Assembly: GCF_002113885.1 (NCBI RefSeq) | Contig: NW_018408845.1 | Location: 884,979 to 948,978, forward strand | Length of the DNA stretch: 64,000 bases | Direction: 5' to 3' | Origin: Mizuhopecten yessoensis | Taxonomy: Eukaryota | Shown: positions 4,625-32,221 of the stretch, one piece after another | Position numbering within the stretch: position 1 is the first letter of the stretch | Layout of the letters: each line of letters starts with the position of its first letter | Translations under genes and position numbers: made by a program | The notes under the pieces: model-generated | Database searches by the model: none | The model's input: only the letters and a program-made list of their open reading frames with translations | What the model was told of the DNA's origin: nothing

Positions 4625-7600
4625 CAATGTTGACAATGAAAACAAACATAATATTATGTTGACAATGAAAACAAACCCATTATTATGTTGACAATGAAAA
4701 CAAACCCATTATTATGTTCACAATGAAAACAAACCCTTTATTATGTTGACAATGAAAACAAACCCAACATTATGTTGACAATGAAAACAAACCCATTATT
4801 ATGTTGACAATGAAAACAAATTCTTTATTATGTTGACAGTGAAAACAAATGTAATCTTATGCTACCAATGAAAACAAACCCTTTATTATGTTGACAATGA
4901 AAATAAACCAAATATTATGTTGACTATGAAAACAAACCCATTATTATGTTGACAATGAAAACAAATTCTTTATTATGTTGACAGTGAAAACAAATGTAAT
5001 CTTATGCTACCAATGAAAACAAACCCTTTATTATGTTGACAATGAAAACAAACTTAATATTATGTTGACAATGAAAACAAACCTAATATCATGTTGACAA
5101 TGAAAACAAACCTAATATTATGTTGACAATGAAAACAAACCCATTTTTATGTTGACAATGAAAAAAAAAAACAATTTTATGTTGACAATGAAAACAAACC
5201 TTATATAATGTTGACAATGAAAACAAACCTTATATTATGTTGACAATGAAAATAAACCCAATATTATGTTGACAATGAAAAAAACCCTATTATTATGTTG
5301 ACTATGAAAACAAACACAATATTATGTTGACAATGAAAACAAACTCAATTTTATGTTGACAATGAAAACAAATCTAATATTATGTTGACTATGAAAACAA
5401 ACCCAACATTATGTTGACAATGAAAACAAACCCACTTTTATGTTGACAATAAAAACAAACCAAATTTTATGCTGACAATGAAAACAAACCCATTATTATG
5501 TTTACAATGAAAACAAACTCAATTTTATGTTGACAATAAAAACAAACGTAATATTATGTTGACAATGAAAACAAACCCATTATTATGTCGACAATGAAAA
5601 CAAACCTTATATTATGTTGACAATGAAAAACAAACCCATGATTATGTTGACAATGAAAACAAACCTTATATTATGTTGACAATGAAAATAAACCCAATAT
5701 TATGTTGACAATGAAAAGAAACCTTTTATTATGTTGACTATGAAAACAAACACAATATTATGTTGACTATGAAAACAAACCCAACATTATGTTGACAATG
5801 AAAACAAACCCAACATTATGTTGACAATGAAAACAAACCCAATGTTATGATGACAATGAAAACAAATCTAATATTATGTTGACTATGAAAACAAACCAAA
5901 TGTTATGTTGACTATGAAAACAAACCCAATATGACGTTGGCAATGAAAACAAACCCAATATTATGTTGGCTATGAAAACAAACCCAATATTATATTGATG
6001 ATGAAAACAAACCCATTATTAAATTGACTATGAAAACAAGCCCAATATTATGTTGGCAATGAAAACAAACCCAACCAATATTATGTTGGCAATGAAAACA
6101 AACCCAACCAATATTATGTTGACAATGAAATCAAACCCAATATCATGTTGGTAATGAAATCAAACCTAACAATACTTGGTCAATGAAACGTTAAACACAA
6201 TGAAAAAGTGTTCACAACGAAAAAGTCTAACCCTATGATATATTGTCAATTAAACTAAACCCAATGATATTCTGACAATGAAATTAAACCAAATGATATG
6301 TTCACAAGTATGTCAAACCCAATAGTATGTTGGCAATAAACACTAACTCTATGATAATTATGTTGACAATAAAATTGAAAAGAAATTGAAATGATATGTT
6401 GACAGTTATATAAAACCTAACGAAATGTTGACAATATAACTAAACCCAGTGATACGTCAAACCCATTAATTTGTTGACAGTGAAATCTAACCCAATAATA
6501 CGTGGTCAATGAAATGTGAAACCCTATGAAATGAAGTGTTGACAACGAAATGTTCCAATCCTATGATATATCGACAAAGAAATCAAACCCAATGCTATGT
6601 TGACAATAAAATAAATCCTTATGATATGCTTACAATGAAATTAAACCCAATGATATGTAGGCAATTATATAAAACGTAATGATATGTTGACAATGGAATT
6701 AAACCCAGTTATTTATTGACAATAACCTCAAGCCCAATGATGTGTTGACAATGAAATCGAACCCAATGGTAAGTTGACAATTAAAAGAATCCTAATGATA
6801 TTTTGACAATGGTATCAAACCACATGAGAAGTTGCCATATACACCAAGTCTAATGATACGTTTACAATAACCTCAACCCGATGATGTGTTGACAATGAAA
6901 ACAACCCCGATCATATGCAGACAAATATGTCAAGCCTAATGATACGTTGACAATGGAATTAAACCCAGTTATTTATTGACAATAACCTCAAGCCCAATGA
7001 TGTGTTGACAATGAAATCAAACTAATGATAGGTTGAGTATGAAATAGAAAAGCATTAATATGTTGACAATTGAAACAAAGTCCATGTCATGTTTACAATA
7101 AAATTTAACTTGTGATATACTGACTGTACAATCCAATGAGAAGCTGGCAGGGAGATAGAAAAAATGGCATGTTGTCCATGAAATAGAAATTTTAATATTA
7201 TGTTGACACTTATATGAAACCCAAATGATAGATCTACAATGAAATAAAAAATCTGATGATATTGTGACAACGAAAATGAAATATATAACCCACAATTATG
7301 ACGACACAGAATACGAAATGCTGTGTTGACAATGAAATAAGACCCAATAAGTTGAGTATAAAATACAAAAGTACAACAACATGTAAGCAATGGAATATGA
7401 AACGCAATGATACCCCCAACGTGTTGACAGTGTTGTATAGAACACAGTTATATGTTTTCAAGGAAATAATAAACCCACAGATAGCTTGATAATGGAATGC
7501 TTATGTTAACGAAAAACTCAAATCCAACGATGCAACGACAATAAAAACACTCATGAACAAATAAATAATAAAATCAAACCAGCGATATTTTGACAAAGAG

Positions 7601-7950
7601 CTCAATAATAAAATAACAAAAAAAACCTCATGATATAGTGACATTTAAACAATGTGTTGACAATAAAATAAGAAACAATAATATGCTGATATTGAAGTAA
7701 ATACAATGCGTTGAAAATAGAATCAATCAAATATGTGTTTACAATGTATCAAACACCCTTATGTGTTGATGACTGAGGAAAGAGAAAAAAAGTATATTTT
7801 GACACTATTACCAGATTTTATACAATGACCATTAAATCCATCCCAATGATACTTTCACACCGTAAATAACCCTACATGTGGAAAATGAATAGAAATCCCA
7901 TTGTATTGACAAAATTAAGTCCATGGCATACTGACAATAACACCACACAA
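4625..7950. repeat. 29-bp tandem satellite (TGTTGACAATGAAAACAAACCCATTATTA)
   Basis: Period of 29 (e.g. 4657 to 4686). Regular to ~6130, then increasingly degenerate to ~7950. Confidence 0.95.
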
Positions 7951-9734
7951 TCCGAAAGTTCGTTACCGGAATATCTCAATTAATAAGCTATTTTGGTATT
8001 GAATGTTACTTTGATACCATAAAAAACATGTCATCTTCAAAAGGAATAATAGTCTATTTTTAGACGTGGACGTACCACACATGATATATCCCCTGCAGTT
8101 ATATGACAAAACCCTAACCCTTTACTAATTTGACAATGGTATTATATGCAGTTTGCTATGGAGTAATACTGTGTGCCATTTTTAGACAGAAATCATACAG
8201 GAAACATTATATAAACATTCGAAACACTGACTGTACAATGCTGACACATCTTCGAAAGCTGAAGATTTCGCTCTCGATACATATCTTCCGTGTATCTAGA
8301 GCGAGTCTCTTTGATTTTGAAGATGTGTTGAAACTGAAATAATATTTTTACACTATTTTGTTACATAAGTAGAACATCTACTCTGCCTTTTTATCAACAC
8401 ATCGAAAATTATTGATTGTCAGTACTGTCTTCCCTTTTGAAAATACATGTAGTTGAGACAATGCACTACATGTTTTAAGGTCTAGTCTATGTTTGTGATA
8501 CATCTATTTATAAAGTTACCACGAATCCACTGCTAATAGTGTAGATAATTATGTAAACGTATATGAAATTGAGAATGTGTATATCTATATACTATTGTTT
8601 TTTGTTTATTTATGTATTATGGGAAAACATTAGAAGCATTAAAAAATGTAAATCAAATTCAGCACGAATCAATATCAGTATACGATAAATAAAAACAGCC
8701 GTTCGGAAATGAAATAGACTCACAGTTTTACAACAAAATATTCATATTTTTATTGCAATAAATTGACCGATTAAAATGGTAGTTTTTTGCTGGAAATCTA
8801 ATTAAGATAATTGATAATTAAGGCACTGACATAACAGTATTAGTAAAAAATAATCTTAAATAAACGTTTTGACAAGAAATAAAATCAATACTTCAGTTGT
8901 AGATGACAAAAAATACAGGATATATATATAGAGCATGGAATGAATTCACGATCCAAAATAAAGATTGCACTATGCGGAAATCGGCTTCATTCCCTCTATT
9001 GCTTGTTTTGTCATAATTGGGACTTTTGAATTATCTAAAGAAACAATCGTCATACGTTAGAACACTGATTTGTGATTTATAACATAATTATCGGTCACTA
9101 ATTAGTTACACAAAACCTAATAATTATTTTATAAATAGTTGACAGTTTCCGCATTTTTCCTGACTTGTGGAAATATTACCTTCTTTCTATAAAAAGAATA
9201 CCTGCACTTAATTCTCGTTTGTCTAAAAAAAACGTCATTTAAGCTTCCCGTCTCAGTATGCATTTAAAATAAAATGTGAAACGTTGAATCTCAAATGCAA
9301 TGAAACGCTTAAGACAGAATTATAATTTCAATTTTCAAATGATAATTTGATATAGATCAATTAAGATGTGGTTCATGTATATGTTATCTCTAACTTATAT
9401 TTTGTCTTAATTTCGATGTCAGACTCGGAGATTTTAAAATTTGCAAAGTTATTTCATGTTATCAAAATGATTTATGTAGCATTTACGAAGTAAAAAGTAA
9501 CTAGCAACTGTTAAAACTTACAATAGTAAACTAAATGTATCTATAAACAGTCTGAGATATCGATTATTTTTAAGTGAAACCAAGGACATATTCCTTTTTT
9601 CTTTAAATATGGGTTTTATGAGGTCTTTTGCTCTGGTTTCTCCTCAGTTTTTGTTGTTTTCTTTCTCTTTTTGTTTTGTTTTGGTGTCCCCTGCGTTCCT
9701 TTGCTTGCTTTGCTTGTTTTATTGACTCCACATG

Positions 9735-24899: not shown

Positions 24900-25075
24900 G
24901 AATTATCAGAGTTTATATATCATCCCTGTTCTGGTTTGTTAACTTTAAATAATCATAGCATATTTCCTCTAATTTTACGACAATTACATTTTTTATACTT
25001 TTCATTTCCGGGTTCACTGTTGTTGCATTGCTGAAAGTCAAGTTTTAAAAAAGTTGCCGACATCTGAGGTATGAA
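24900..25075. promoter_or_regulatory. Probable bidirectional promoter for GFOD (-) and MsrA (+), with a candidate non-coding MsrA exon
   Basis: Head-to-head arrangement; ETS-like TTCCGG at ~25006; candidate + strand donor GAG|GTATGA after 25068. The MsrA ATG exon starts at an acceptor (27791), so an upstream non-coding exon is expected. Confidence 0.4.
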
Positions 25076-27119: not shown

Positions 27120-27794
27120 ATTCTATTTCTTTCACATTAAGTACTGTACTAGTAAATATGTGAAATGACAAACTCACTTTGAAGGTTGGCTTTCATACAC
27201 ATCAGTATTAAGTTTAGATCAAAAGTTACCTCAAGGTGCATTTACTGTTAACATGACTCGATCAAACAGATTAGAGGAAAGAAGAGAAAAGATCGAACTG
27301 ACAAAGAACTAATGAAGATGGTACAAAGGTGGGCGCCAAGATCCCTCTGGGATCTCTTGTTTAAAATACAGTTTTATGTTGTTAGTTTTTTGTTTCCCTT
27401 AGTAGATTGTATACATGTTTATGACAGTCTTCCGTAATTTCAACAGTTTTCTGCCGATATGAGTACGAAATCGCGGATGCTTCTTAAGTGCGCGGAAACC
27501 GGTAACCCGAGGATACTATCTGTCAAAATGTCCTAGTCTGGTGTCAGGGCCAGAGGAAACTCGGGCTAGCATTTGAGTAACAATTACCGTTATGAGTTAC
27601 AATTTTATTACTGAAATGGGGAATCATGTGAAATGAAAACACATAAAATTCTTTTAAATTTCAGGATCAACGGCTTCACACTTTCAACGGAACACAATAA
27701 ATTATACAATGTATTATCTAATTGGCTGTTGTAATATTGGATGATTGTTTAGATGAAGATCAAACTATAAAAGAAATGTTTATATTTATAGAAC

Positions 27795-29561
27795 ATGTCC
27801 GAGACAGTTGAAGGCAGACTGGAGAAGGCCACATTTGCCATGGGCTGATTCTGGTTCCCAGATGCCCGGTTTGGGTGTGTCCCTGGTGTGGTTAAAACCC
27901 GAGTTGGATTCACTGGTGGTTCAACAAAGGGTGCAACATACCGAAACATGTAAGACATTGTTGTTCAACTTTATTTCTGCCTTTATGAATAGTATTGATA
28001 TACAGTAAATCTATTCTATAACGACACCATTAGAGTTTTGCTTTTAATAAATATGTAAAGAGTTTTATTACTACAGTGTTTTTCATTGCTTATCAGTGAC
28101 CATTTTCTTGATGTTTAAGAATCTAAATTAGAATATATGAATATCAATTACTAGGATTTATACTAAGAAGGTTTGAAGGAAATAATTTCATGTTTCAGAG
28201 GTGATCACACTGAAACTGTCGCCTTGGACTTTGATCCAAATAAGATCAGCTTTGGTGAGTTACTGGAGATGTTCTGGACAAATCACAGCCCTTTTTCAAA
28301 GAGTAGTAACCAATACATGTCTGCCATCTTTTATCATAGCACAAAACAGAAGATGGTGGCAGAAGAATCGAGGGACAAATTCCAAAAGGAAATGACAAGA
28401 CCCATAGCAACGAAAATCCTTCCTGCTGGTGAATTCTACAATGCTGAAGAGTAGGTATACCCTAGTCTTTAACAACAGACATAACTTTTGATACATGCTA
28501 CTCTGTAATGTATAGGCCACTATCTGTTACATTGCATGCACATGTCAAATTATCAAGTTTAGGAAATAAAGTCAGAGCAGATTGCCCGCAGGTTATATGC
28601 TACATAAAAACTATTATACCCAATGAATACTGGGTTTCTTTTCAACGTCAGGTAATGGACCTCTCACCCATACTTCTCTGGATATGTAACCACGTTAGTT
28701 ATCAGTGCTTTTGTTTTAGATAAACATGTTTTAACTTGTATATCCTTGACATACCAATAGCACTTTTCATTATTCTGATGTCAACAACCATGTTGTGTTG
28801 TAGACATACGTTTTGGTTGTTCACTTACTGTTCTACAGTTACCACCAGAAGTACATGCTGAGGCAGCACAAAGATTTTCTAAACAAACTGAATCTCTCTG
28901 ATGAAGACATTGTTACTTCTCATGTGGCTGCCAGGCTCAATGGCTATGTGGGGGGCTTTGGTTCCTTAGAGCAGTTTGATCAGGTGAGCATGTCAGATTT
29001 AGCTTTACTTACTTTTGTGTTTGTGAAACAAAAGTCTCTGTCAGTACTGTATAACAAGGAAACTTTGTCCATTAAAAACATTCACCCTTCATAAGTTAAG
29101 TCCATATTAAAGAACTTCTCAGTGGAATTATTTTTAATACTACATTCACCAATGTGATAAATTTGCCCTCATAATAGAGGGCAAAATCAGCAAAGGTTAA
29201 ACTATGGAAAACATTTACTGATATACATTATTTCATGAGGATCTCTAAGCACTATACATGTACTGTAAATCCAAACACAGAATTGACTGTAAGCTCATTG
29301 TTTCTAAAGATTATTAGAATTGGTGGTGTACCTTTATACAGTATTACTGACGTGTCAGTACAAGGTGGTTCAGGATTGAAGCATGATGTTCTGATAATAG
29401 TTTTCTAGAGCATTGTTTATTATTGACACTTCAGTTTTGTATTCGACATAAACCCATTGATGATCCTTATCTTACAATTCCAGGAGTGTGATTTGTTTGG
29501 CTTATCAGAACATCAACAATCATTTGTAAGAAAACAAATCCAGAAGAGACAGAAGAATTAA
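27795..29561 (+). CDS. MSRA: Selenoprotein methionine-S-sulfoxide reductase A (Sec-MsrA), 209 aa, 4 coding exons
   Basis: Exons 27795-27949, 28199-28450, 28839-28983 and 29484-29561; all GT-AG, phases consistent, 630 nt. Protein: MSETVEGRLEKATFAMG-U(TGA 27846-27848)-FWFPDARFGCVPGVVKTRVGFTGG...IGDHTE...QYMSAIFY...FYNAEDYHQKY...ARLNGYVGG. The UGA sits at the catalytic Cys of the MsrA GCFW motif, and a SECIS is present in the 3'UTR. Confidence 0.95.
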
Positions 29562-29572
29562 GCAATGAAGTG

Positions 29573-29722
29573 GTATTCCAGTACCAGGATGCATGCTGAG
29601 ATCGGACATACTGATTATACAGTATTCCAGTACCAGGATGTATGCTGAGATCGGACATACTGATTATAAAGTATTCCAGTACCAGGACGTATGCTGAGAT
29701 CGGACATACTGATTATACAGTA
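29573..29722. repeat. 49-bp minisatellite in MsrA 3'UTR copy 1 (~3 units)
   Basis: GTATTCCAGTACCAGGATGTATGCTGAGATCGGACATACTGATTATACA, period 49. Confidence 0.9.
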
Positions 29723-30016
29723 ATATCAACTTAGTTACCATGGTTCCAAACCTCACCTTTGGGCTCAAACCCCACTTTTGGGCTCAAACCTCACTTTAGG
29801 GCTCCCATGGCCTGGTGTTTATAGGATTGTTACACATATTATAGTACTACTGTTTTACAACCAGGCTCTCCACTCTTCTCTTCTCTAAATACCAGTATAA
29901 TATCCACTGTATCTTGTTTTATATTATTCTACCGCTGGTACCAATTCTGACAATGGCTGTACATTTACTCCGATTTTGTACAACACAGGGCTTTCCTATC
30001 AGCCATACAGTATACT

Positions 30017-30086
30017 CAAAATATCAGTAAATGAAGGTGAAAGTTGAAAGCATTAGACTTTGTCCTGATGTAGTGCATGATATTTG
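30017..30086 (+). promoter_or_regulatory. SECIS element (type I), copy 1
   Basis: Helix I AAATATCA/TGATATTT; core AUGA(30031)...UGAU; helix II AGG..AAAGUU / GACUUU..CCU; unpaired AAA 12 nt after the core UGA. Confidence 0.85.
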
Positions 30087-30325
30087 TTGTAGAAGAATAT
30101 GGCTGATTGGACAGCAGTGTGCTGTCTGTGATATTCGATATTTTCAAATACATTTTATTATTTGTATTCAACACTATTTACAGTTATCTTGTTTTTCTTA
30201 CTTATGTATTCAATTTAAAACTAAACCAAATGAGTTCTAGTTTCAAGATCAAAGGACATGAAGCATTGTATGTCAATTTTGTATTAGACATAAACCCATT
30301 GATGATCCTTATCTTACAATTCCAG

Positions 30326-30403
30326 GAGTGTGATTTGTTTGGCTTATCAGAACGTCAACAATCATTTGTAAGAAAACAAATCCAGGAGACACAGAAGAAT
30401 TAA
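30326..30403 (+). CDS. MSRA: Duplicated alternative terminal exon of Sec-MsrA (ECDLFGLSERQQSFVRKQIQETQKN*)
   Basis: Near-identical copy of 29484-29561, 842 bp downstream, with an intact TTCCAG acceptor and stop; three amino-acid differences. Confidence 0.6.
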   Translation, partial: ECDLFGLSERQQSFVRKQIQETQKN

Positions 30404-30413
30404 GCAATGAAGT

Positions 30414-31132
30414 GGTATTCCAGTACCAGGATGTATGCTGAGATCGGACATACTGATTATACAGTATTCCAGTGCCAGGATGTATGCTGAGATCGGACAT
30501 ACCGATTATACAGTATTCCAGTACCAGGATGTATGCTGAGATCGGACATACTAATTATACAGTATTTCAGTACCAGGATGTATGCTGAGATCGGACATAC
30601 TGATTATACAGTATTCCAGTACCAGGAGGTATGCTGAGATCGGACATACTGATTATAAAGTATTCCAGTACCAGGACGTATGCTGAGATCGAACATACTG
30701 ATTATACAGTATTCCAGTATTCAGTATTCCAGTACCAGGATGTATGCTTAGATCAGACATACTGATTATACAGTATTCTAGTACCAGGACGTATGCTGAG
30801 ATCGGACATACTGATTATACAGTATTCCAGTATACAGTATTCCAGTACCAGGATGTATGCTGAGATCAGACATACTGATTATACAGTATTCCAGTACCAG
30901 GACGTATGCTGAGATCGGACATACTGATTATACAGTATTCCAGTACCAAGATGTATGCTGAGATCGGACATACTGATTATACAGTATTCCAGTTCCAGGA
31001 TGTATGCTGAGATCGGACATACTGATTATACAGTATTCCAGTACCAAGATGTATGCTGAGATCGGACATACTGATTATAAAGTATTCCAGTACCAGGACG
31101 TATGCTGAGGTCGGACATACTGATTATACAGT
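30414..31132. repeat. 49-bp minisatellite in MsrA 3'UTR copy 2 (~14 units)
   Basis: Same unit as 29573-29722, expanded. Confidence 0.92.
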
Positions 31133-31427
31133 AATATCAACTTAGTTACCATGGTTCCAAACCTCACCTTTGGGCTCAAACCTCACTTTTGGGCTCAAAC
31201 CTCACCTTTGGGCTCCCATGGTCTGGTGTTCATAAGATTGTTACACATATTATAGTAGTACTGTTTTACAACCAGGCTCTCCACTCTCTCTTCTCTAAAT
31301 ACCAGTATAATATCCACTGTATCATGTTTTATATTATTCTACCGCTGGTACCAATTCTGACGATGGCTGTACATTTACTCTGATTTTGTACAACACAGGG
31401 CTTTCCTATCAGCCATACAGTATACTC

Positions 31428-31496
31428 CAAATATCATTAAATGAAGGTGAAAGTTGAAAGCATTAGACTTTGTCCTGATGTAGTGCATGATATTTG
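31428..31496 (+). promoter_or_regulatory. SECIS element (type I), copy 2
   Basis: Same core, helix II and AAA loop as copy 1; helix I is a perfect 10-bp CAAATATCAT/ATGATATTTG. Confidence 0.87.
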
Positions 31497-32221
31497 TTGT
31501 AGAAGAATATGGCTGATTGGACAGCAGTGTGCTGTCTGTGATATTTGATATTTTCAAATACATTTTATTTGTATTCAACACTTTTTACAGTTATCTTGTT
31601 TTTCTTACTTATGTATTCAATTTAAAACTAAACCAAATGAGTTCTAGTTTCAAGATCAAAGGACATGAAGCTTTGCATGTCATGATTAAGGGGAAATAAC
31701 TTTCCAGTTTTTGCTCAAAATGTGACCTTTTCATTTACAGGAAAGAACCAGTATTTTTTTTTACCACTGACCTGTGAAAGTCCTTTTGCAAGGGTCATCA
31801 GGAAATATCAAACCTCTAGGTCCATTGCTATTTCATAAAGGAACTACTTGGGTCCGACTATTCAAACCATAAGGATGGATCAATGAGAGCAGACCTGTTA
31901 TTTCTGTTTTTTGGGGTTCTTTTTGCATAAAATTTTACTTGAAACTTTCTACAAAGCATACTTTCTTTCTGTAGGTATGGTATCATATTGATACTTAGTT
32001 CGATTCAATTTCTTTGCAATCCAAGGGTTCCTCTCACTTAAGATTCAAGTATGTCATGACAAATTGGAAGGCTCTATGTTCACCACCTTGCACGTGAATA
32101 GGATACATGTAGATGAGTTTGATTCTTTGATGCACCTAAAAAATAAATGCAGCAGGATAATGGTAAAACTGACTGGCTCTTAAGTCAGGTATCACTTCTC
32201 TATAATCTTCAAAGGACAGGT

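Follow-up and report, generated by a model that had tools for sequence, protein, structure and literature searches.

The locus considered here raises the question of whether an in-frame TGA, at the place where methionine-S-sulfoxide reductase A (MsrA) has its catalytic residue, is read as selenocysteine (Sec) or ends translation. It lies in a 64,000-nucleotide stretch of the genome of the scallop Mizuhopecten yessoensis, called the window below; all features are on its forward (+) strand. Our answer is that the locus is a real, expressed scallop MsrA gene with a UGA-encoded catalytic selenocysteine. The gene is very probably functional, with five exons, four of them coding, and its product a two-domain methionine-S-sulfoxide reductase A of 209 residues in which codon 18, UGA, specifies Sec by way of a form-1 SECIS element.

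Gene structure and transcript

The first coding exon (exon A, 27792..27949) follows an acceptor at 27790-27791 and begins its frame at ATG 27795; it supplies residues 1-51 and two bases of codon 52, and is kept in Pecten and Ylistrum. Translation from this ATG gives MSETVEGRLEKATFAMG, then the TGA at 27846-27848, then FWFPDARFGC. Exon B (28199..28450) encodes the core of the catalytic domain, with its GDHTE and QYMS motifs, exon C (28839..28983) a helical domain, and the last coding exon (29484..29561) ends in TAA at 29559-29561. All three GT..AG junctions (27949>28199, 28450>28839 and 28983>29484) are read in RNA, in two raw runs (X23 and X24) and one contig set (X18). The joint leaving exon A, 27949>28199, is present in 32 reads of X23, in 8 of X24 and in the X18 contig. 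The intact frame of four coding exons, proposed in a preliminary description made from the sequence alone, is borne out at every junction.

The reads add a fifth, non-coding 5′ exon that the earlier exon count had left out (24991..25068, its 5′ limit approximate), with a GAG/gt donor at 25068/25069. The string AAGTTGCCGACATCTG, found at a single place in the window (25051-25066), precedes position 27790 in 20 reads of X23 and also in X24 and the X18 contig. Upstream of ATG 27795 the frame in this exon contains a stop with no later ATG, which excludes an N-terminal extension from it. At the other end, the 3′ UTR runs from the TAA to about 30100-30264: raw reads cover the gene through the 29978-30111 bin and fall to zero depth in 30112-30245, and the X18 contig reaches 30264. 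Reads extend over exon A with its TGA, over all junctions and over the bins holding the SECIS-like element described below, so that UGA and element are together in the mature transcript.

The preliminary description had named TGT or TGC in reads at 27846 as a refutation. The codon is TGA, with no other letter, in the two raw runs and the contig set of RNA and in a set of DNA contigs, drawn from three studies. Sites nearby (27815, 27864 and 27884) do vary among the read and contig sets, with other alleles present there in the RNA. The idea that the TGA is a sequencing or assembly error for TGT or TGC is refuted by these reads and contigs, and further opposed by the presence of TGA in other species; we give it practically no weight.

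The TGA and its surrounding frame

Searches with separate exon pieces or database proteins as queries place the TGA at the MsrA catalytic position, as first proposed. The piece directly after it matches positions 9-40 of the Pfam PMSR profile (E 1.6e-5), and exon B matches positions 48-137 of the same profile (PF01625, E 1e-20), as well as PDB entries 4u66 and 4w8c (E about 1e-14). Exon C matches PF20939, the 'Selenoprotein MsrA helical domain' (MsrA_helical; E 2.5e-10, 40.4 bits against a cut-off of 23.7), and a profile search found no other match to this family in the whole genome. The best PDB relatives are the entries for the selenoprotein MsrA of Clostridium oremlandii (CoMsrA). The stretch ATFAMG-U-FWFPD lines up with ATFxMxCFW in Cys forms and, in CoMsrA, with the region of its native Sec16, which stands opposite codon 18; F19-N51 fall on CoMsrA residues 17-49. 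Phe replaces the +3 Gly of the GCFWG motif. The resulting GUFWFPD had been taken for an odd motif, a view that we drop: FWxPD/E is the usual motif of the MsrA subfamily concerned, as in FWGPDAQFG of C. oremlandii.

The TGA is also conserved. Seven other loci (L013-L017, L026, L028) keep it together with the frame on both sides: those of Pecten maximus and Ylistrum balloti, and five from further away, which comprise three genomic loci and intronless transcript contigs. With the scallop gene included, eight loci have TGA at the same codon; the orthologue check proposed earlier thus turned up TGA instead of Cys in two other scallop genera and at five distant loci. In relatives, coding conservation extends over the 17 codons that lead up to the TGA and the 33 that follow it. 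Synonymous change exceeds non-synonymous change upstream of the TGA too, and a 3-nt indel there, in the comparison with Pecten and Ylistrum, leaves the frame intact. Among the three scallops dN/dS is 0.10-0.20 at a dS of 0.5-0.76 over all exons, including those after the TGA.

These data bear on the possibility that the TGA is a true stop and the locus a decaying or non-coding MsrA pseudogene, yielding only a 17-residue peptide. Public annotation lacks the first coding exon, and the SECIS element described below scores under the Rfam threshold; both would fit such a locus. A relic, however, should not be under purifying selection downstream of its stop, nor hold the TGA at the same codon in eight loci with no other frame defect in three scallop genera. 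The locus is also expressed as spliced RNA, and the stem-loop beyond the stop codon is conserved. We regard a pseudogene as highly improbable.

The public models suggest a second alternative, in which translation starts downstream of the TGA (models of 93 and 134 amino acids) to give an MsrA-like protein that has lost its N-terminal part, the catalytic residue included. Database models of Mizuhopecten, Pecten and Ylistrum do begin at a Met in exon B, without the catalytic exon. Such truncation is the expected output of a gene caller that stops at TGA, and the preliminary description had rightly anticipated it. A product begun there would lack the catalytic Sec or Cys together with Tyr47 and Glu55, the conservation of the codons flanking the TGA would go unexplained, and no read joint supports 30093-30131, which the 93-aa model has as its last exon. 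This start has very little probability compared with a frame running from ATG 27795 through a recoded UGA.

A small hairpin around the UGA had been put forward as a possible modulator of recoding. It folds no better than expected (z -0.6, with 52 of 200 shuffles at least as good), and four orthologues give z values of -1.0 to -1.4; distant orthologues pair differently, and the inner stem consists of the conserved F-W-F-P-D/E codons. We have set this candidate aside.

A SECIS-shaped element in the 3′ UTR

SECIS element 1 lies at 30021..30083, within the transcribed 3′ UTR and in the sole 3′ UTR block conserved with Pecten and Ylistrum. Its AUGA (30031-30034) begins 470 nt beyond the TAA, and is followed by AAA at 30047-30049 and GA at 30067-30068, with a longer outer stem at about 29995-30110. 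The fold comprises helix I, the AUGA-GA core, helix II and the AAA loop (MFE z -3.5, none of 200 shuffles as good). Six such elements, with pairs counted by register from AUGA and GA because a MAFFT alignment misaligned their 3′ halves, have a common register of AUGA, 13 nt, AAA loop, 13 nt and GA, on helices whose sequence differs entirely between lineages. A pattern scan of both strands of the window, at thresholds set after the element had been seen, was passed only by SECIS 1 and its copy, as against an average of 0.2 in shuffles. Two transcript contigs of distant orthologues, L026 and L028, and the locus L016 gave no convincing SECIS by either the pattern scan or Rfam; the contigs may be incomplete, or the geometry different.

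The earlier proposal of a canonical SECIS about 470 nt past the stop thus holds for position, core, register, fold and conservation. It falls short on the covariance score, where the element reaches 17.1 bits on the Rfam SECIS_1 model, whose gathering score is 35, and it was not listed in a 5.5-kb Rfam scan. SECIS_1 is nonetheless the best family at that place, and it leads the Rfam matches at the corresponding site in each of three lineages (17.1, 22.1 and 22.7 bits). For calibration we took the TGA-containing GPx genes of the same genome, since PF10262 (Rdx) had given no genomic match. One GPx SECIS scored 34 bits and was missed by the genome-wide SECIS_1 scan, which listed eight matches, two of them above the cut-off; a second plausible GPx SECIS had no SECIS_1 match. 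Because GPx elements are likewise missed or under-scored, we read the shortfall at SECIS 1 as a limit of the model and not as a refutation, and a selenoproteome survey of this genome cannot therefore rely on the threshold.

The genome encodes Sec machinery: a search for two of its parts, tRNA-Sec and SepSecS, found a tRNA-Sec (77.3 bits, anticodon TCA) and SepSecS exons. It also has at least seven GPx exons with an in-frame TGA. We infer Sec insertion at codon 18, and this, together with the low Rfam score, gives some room to near-cognate read-through of the UGA (as Trp, Cys or Arg), with the stem-loop unrelated. Read-through of that kind would not account for an AUGA/AAA/GA core held in the right register in orthologues despite different helices. 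Cys-form relatives have TGT or TGC at this codon and no leaky stop, and the nearest relative to have been characterised is itself a natural selenoprotein. We judge near-cognate decoding very unlikely. In the mechanism that we favour, UGA codon 18 would be recoded to Sec under the direction of the form-1 SECIS, using the tRNA-Sec machinery.

Downstream of SECIS 1 the end of the gene is duplicated. A second last exon (ECDLFGLSERQQSFVRKQIQETQKN and a stop, 30326..30403) may serve as an alternative to the first: the joint 28983>30326 occurs in 6 reads of X23 and 3 of X24, although the assignment of reads between the copies is insecure because they are nearly identical. SECIS element 2 (31431..31493; AUGA 31441-31444, GA 31477-31478) has RNA-read cover, passes the pattern scan and differs from SECIS 1 at two positions within these limits. 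The duplicated cassette of last exon plus SECIS could give two isoforms with separately tunable recoding.

Recycling and comparison with known systems

By analogy with characterised MsrAs, Sec18 would attack methionine-S-sulfoxide and be converted to a selenenic acid. This might be reduced directly by glutathione or glutaredoxin, as in CoMsrA, or might form a selenenylsulfide with Cys28. Besides Sec, the scallop protein has two cysteines, Cys28 (in FGC) and one in the last exon (in EC), and so is not of the 1-Cys type; Cys28 is conserved across all animal loci fetched, and the last-exon Cys lacks conservation beyond the scallops. Among 95 relatives, Phe at +3 (U-F-W-F) is found in 51 of 55 Sec forms and in none of 40 Cys forms, and Cys at +10 in 35 of the 55 and 11 of the 40. 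From these counts Cys28 could be a dedicated resolving residue, a role that would parallel the additional resolving Cys in MsrB1, a mammalian selenoprotein. We offer as a tentative proposal, itself rather unlikely, that the animal Sec-MsrA departs in mechanism from the 1-Cys bacterial enzyme: Cys28 would resolve the intermediate as a selenenylsulfide, and in this scallop the duplicated cassette would yield two tunable isoforms. The U-F-W-F/Cys+10 signature is in any case a cheap, testable lead on how Sec-MsrA is recycled.

The gene was missed by public annotation, and such a selenoprotein was already known from marine invertebrates. Sec-MsrA was reported in 2012 to be widespread in these animals, with examples from Amphimedon, Trichoplax, Nematostella, Capitella and Branchiostoma (Jiang et al. 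2012, PMC3473315), so the scallop gene is a further case of a known selenoprotein and does not overturn current understanding. Lottia, the sole mollusc in that study, was without MsrA (PMC3473315), and in the literature searched we found no report of Sec-MsrA from scallops or other bivalves. The present gene adds a bivalve example to a family from sponges, placozoans, cnidarians, annelids and amphioxus, and calls for revised gene models of a redox-repair enzyme in no fewer than three scallop species of commercial importance.

The scallop gene resembles the marine-invertebrate Sec-MsrA genes (PMC3473315) in being eukaryotic, in having a catalytic-site UGA and a 3′ UTR element, here SECIS-shaped, and in belonging to an aquatic animal whose selenoproteome is large; it differs in the tandem duplication of its terminal exon and SECIS. 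Sec-MsrA is also known from algae (PMC7539508). With canonical animal Cys-MsrA of the GCFWGAE type, two genes of which stand in tandem on another contig of the same genome, it shares family PF01625 and chemistry. Those enzymes have a catalytic Cys in a GMGCFWGAERRFW motif, and the two loci give no PF20939 match. The Cys-form two-domain MsrAs of insects, mites and some archaea likewise join PMSR to MsrA_helical and are 50-60% identical to P0024, the invertebrate Sec form used as query; they differ in having Cys for Sec, G, A, S or E for Phe at +3, and usually no Cys at +10.

The closest counterpart of solved structure is CoMsrA of Clostridium (Alkaliphilus) oremlandii (PDB 4u66, 4lwj-m, 4w8c, 7c13). 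Both proteins have 209 residues, with Sec16 in the bacterial enzyme and Sec18 in the scallop, a numbering offset of 2. They have in common the FWxPDAxFG motif, the helical domain PF20939 and Tyr47, Glu55, Gln89, Tyr90, His137 and Tyr140, so that all active-site residues listed for CoMsrA (PMC4333827) are kept in the scallop protein. CoMsrA contains no Cys at all and, as a 1-Cys type enzyme, is recycled by glutaredoxin, whereas scallop MsrA has Cys28 and the last-exon Cys. Being bacterial, CoMsrA uses a bacterial-type SECIS inside its coding region. Counted from the Sec, position +3 is Gly in CoMsrA and Phe21 in the scallop enzyme, and position +10 is Ser and Cys28, respectively.

An MsrA gene interrupted by TGA

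Four coding exons, all in phase, lie on the forward strand between 27792 and 29561 and encode an MsrA candidate of 209 codons, TGA counted in. From the start ATG at 27795 the frame reads MSETVEGRLEKATFAMG, an in-frame TGA at 27846-27848 (codon 18, the predicted Sec18) and FWFPDARFGCVPGVVKTRVGFTGGSTKGATYRN, and it continues through exon B (28199-28450), exon C (28839-28983) and a last exon with its TAA (29484-29561). Homology searches were run on exon pieces taken separately. The 33 residues 3′ of the TGA matched positions 9-40 of PMSR, the Pfam catalytic domain profile (E 1.6e-5), exon B matched positions 48-137 (E 1e-20), and exon C matched PF20939, 'Selenoprotein methionine sulfoxide reductase A, helical domain' (E 2.5e-10). 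Translation and Pfam thus confirm the observation of a TGA within MsrA homology in an intact four-exon frame, and interpretation of the gene as a selenoprotein MsrA is supported.

Two raw RNA-seq runs (X23 and X24), one RNA contig set and one DNA contig set were aligned to 27700-31700. All three predicted GT..AG junctions were read in RNA, the first of them by 32 reads of X23, 8 reads of X24 and one 492-nt contig, as the proposed splicing of four coding exons required. Reads continue from 27790 into an upstream exon, also inside the window, that ends at 25068 (GAG, then gt). Since its frame holds a stop without a later ATG, we take this to be a 5′ UTR exon and 27795 to be the start codon. No letters other than TGA were found at 27846-27848 in any run, with a depth of about 30 reads in X23, and neither TGT nor TGC, the readings that would have undermined the preliminary description, was present. 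Because TGA appears in every run despite variation from the reference at the neighboring sites 27815, 27864 and 27884, an assembly error is ruled out, and the codon is common to different haplotypes.

Four coding polymorphisms change residues: A24T at 27864, Asp to Asn at 28233 in exon B, Ser to Gly at 28338, and His to Arg at 29512. Position 28338 encodes Gly in every RNA read and in the RNA contig, as in Pecten and Ylistrum, and the reference Ser in the DNA contig (X3); the non-reference letter at 29512 occurs in 4/4 runs.

The 3′ end of the gene is tandemly duplicated over 29435-31682, in a cassette that contains the acceptor and last exon, a minisatellite with units of ~45 nt, and the SECIS candidate. 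The peptide from copy 2 of the last exon differs at three residues, and joints from exon C were read to both copies. Additional read joints (29668>31249 and 31484>29782) point to structural variants. Taken with the copy-2 letters present at 29512, 30018 and 30027 in all runs, the joints of the duplicated cassette suggest copy-number or structural polymorphism. In Pecten and Ylistrum the cassette is single.

Orthologues and public annotation

All four coding exons align at the Pecten and Ylistrum loci, where exon A reads ...ATFAMS-TGA-FWFPEAQFGC in both and carries a 3-nt indel 5′ of the TGA that keeps the frame. Three more distant genomic loci from ENA assemblies likewise read ATFAMS-TGA-FWFPEAQFGC, so that each of these five orthologues carries TGA in place of a Cys codon. 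Substitution statistics, calculated per exon with exons unjoined, gave pairwise scallop dS values of 0.52-0.76 and dN/dS of 0.10-0.20, and per site the 17 codons 5′ of the TGA likewise have more synonymous than non-synonymous change. At the catalytic position, many relatives in the databases carry a 'W'; in the contigs that were checked, which are intronless transcripts, this is TGA under another genetic code. The relatives from insects, mites and archaea use Cys instead. Both loci are flanked upstream by a GFO/IDH/MocA oxidoreductase gene, encoded on the other strand at 0.8-1.3 kb from the Sec exon (7524-8711 in the Pecten locus L013, 6158-7345 in the Ylistrum locus L014), and downstream by a sulfatase gene, indicating that local synteny is conserved between the two genera.

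Annotation pipelines had been expected to truncate the gene, and the catalytic exon is indeed absent from 3/3 public scallop models. The database entry 'Peptide methionine sulfoxide reductase [Mizuhopecten yessoensis]', 93 aa long, matches exon C at 100% identity, starts at a Met within exon B, and terminates in KNMADWTAVCCL, which corresponds to 30093-30131, immediately 3′ of the SECIS. The aligned reads contain no RNA joint between exon C and 30093, and this terminal exon therefore appears to be an artefact of annotation. At 134 aa each, the models for Pecten maximus and Ylistrum balloti start at MFW in exon B. Annotated crustacean, echinoderm, tick and annelid proteins are cut or mis-modelled precisely at the TGA position. 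For L028, a transcript contig from JGI that represents a distant orthologue, the database protein passes another TGA (860-871) three codons short of its end; this is probably the true stop, the caller having used a TGA=Trp code.

The SECIS candidate and selenocysteine machinery

A SECIS element had been proposed downstream of the stop, and its fold, core and conservation favour this, although the Rfam covariance score is low: the best family, SECIS_1 (RF00031), reaches 17.1 bits where the gathering score is 35, and copy 1 is missing from a 5.5-kb Rfam scan. In copy 1 (30021-30083, forward strand), AUGA lies at 30031 and GA at 30067, and a small apical loop holds AAA (30047-30049). Helix II contains 10 standard pairs in 13 positions, and helix I runs on beyond the core into a longer outer stem. 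The MFE fold has a z of -3.5, and 0/200 shuffles were as stable. Of the 3′ UTR, only the SECIS block can be aligned between scallop genera, and the Ylistrum copy scores 22.1 bits on SECIS_1. Two distant orthologues have a SECIS-like element 0.85-1.8 kb 3′ of the stop that keeps the register (AUGA, 13 nt, AAA loop, 13 nt, GA) with an entirely different helix sequence; one of these has 13/13 pairs and scores 22.7 bits. A strict pattern scan of both strands of the 64-kb window, with thresholds set after the element had been seen, passed only 30031 and its duplicate at 31441 (copy 2, 31431-31493), and 60 shuffles gave a mean of 0.2 passes.

The SECIS_1 model is insensitive in the Mizuhopecten genome, where a genome-wide scan returned 8 matches, 2 of them above cut-off. 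At least seven glutathione peroxidase (GPx) exons with in-frame TGA are present (contigs C3892, C3722, C1046, C4792 and C1459; loci L019 and L029-L032), including one cluster on C3722, and their SECIS elements range from 35 bits to undetectable. One scores 34.0 bits yet is missing from the genome-wide list, and another plausible element has no SECIS_1 match at all. Given the conserved block, the shared register, the rarity of the pattern and this insensitivity, we do not consider the low score a refutation. RNA reads cover both SECIS copies, with depth zero at 30112-30245 and beyond 31586, which places both inside transcripts.

A small hairpin around the UGA, suggested earlier as a modulator of recoding, is unsupported. 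Its fold has a z of -0.6 (-1.0 to -1.4 in orthologues), 52/200 shuffles were at least as stable, and the conserved FWFPD/E codons make up its inner stem, with pairing that changes in distant orthologues. Elsewhere in the window, a long, near-perfect inverted repeat at 32230-32379 matches miRNA families on both strands (MIR6425, 35.8 bits; mir-2068, 34.5 bits), far below gathering scores, and is probably a transposon-derived hairpin.

The genome encodes a tRNA-Sec (77.3 bits; ARAGORN: SeC, anticodon TCA) as well as SepSecS, the latter in several exons. Another contig (C5459, 1666328-1669591 and 1685163-1688857; loci L001, L002, L004 and L005) carries two canonical Cys-type MsrA genes (GMGCFWGAER...; GMGCFWGAERRFW and GMGCFWGAERKFW) in tandem ~19 kb apart, making the Sec gene an extra, divergent paralogue. 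PF20939 was found in the Sec gene only. Cys-MsrA matches at 1667331-1668091 hold TAG stops, which may reflect intron read-through or a defect.

Relation to known Sec-MsrAs

The gene is a genuine, unannotated member of an already known selenoprotein family. Sec-MsrA has been reported to be widespread in marine invertebrates (sponge, placozoan, cnidarian, annelid and amphioxus) and absent from the one mollusc studied (Jiang et al. 2012, PMC3473315). There is good documentation of Sec-MsrAs in algae, too. Our literature search found no report of Sec-MsrA in scallops or other bivalves. The finding will help annotation and gives a minor lead on mechanism, and would not surprise a specialist.

That lead comes from 95 relatives with the motif (alignment A4, proteins P0024-P0148), in which TGA called as W was scored as the Sec form. 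Phe at +3 occurs in 51/55 Sec forms versus 0/40 Cys forms and Cys at +10 in 35/55 versus 11/40, an apparent association with Sec that is a lead and not a result, as the sample is phylogenetically biased towards kin of one Sec form. The last-exon Cys is confined to scallops and a few others.

The closest CHARACTERISED relative is Clostridium oremlandii MsrA (CoMsrA), which also provides the best solved structures for exons A and B. CoMsrA occurs naturally as a selenoprotein (209 residues, Sec16); its active site needs the C-terminal helical domain, and it contains no Cys and is recycled by glutaredoxin, not thioredoxin (PMC4333827). The scallop protein keeps Tyr47, Glu55, Gln89, Tyr90, His137 and Tyr140 (numbering offset 2). 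It also shares the FWxPDAxFG motif, so 'FPD', first regarded as an oddity, is the norm for this subfamily. Ordinary MsrA chemistry would be expected at Sec18, and recycling would proceed by GSH/glutaredoxin as in CoMsrA, or via Cys28. The two proteins differ at +3, where the scallop has Phe and CoMsrA Gly, and at Cys28 itself, where CoMsrA has Ser.
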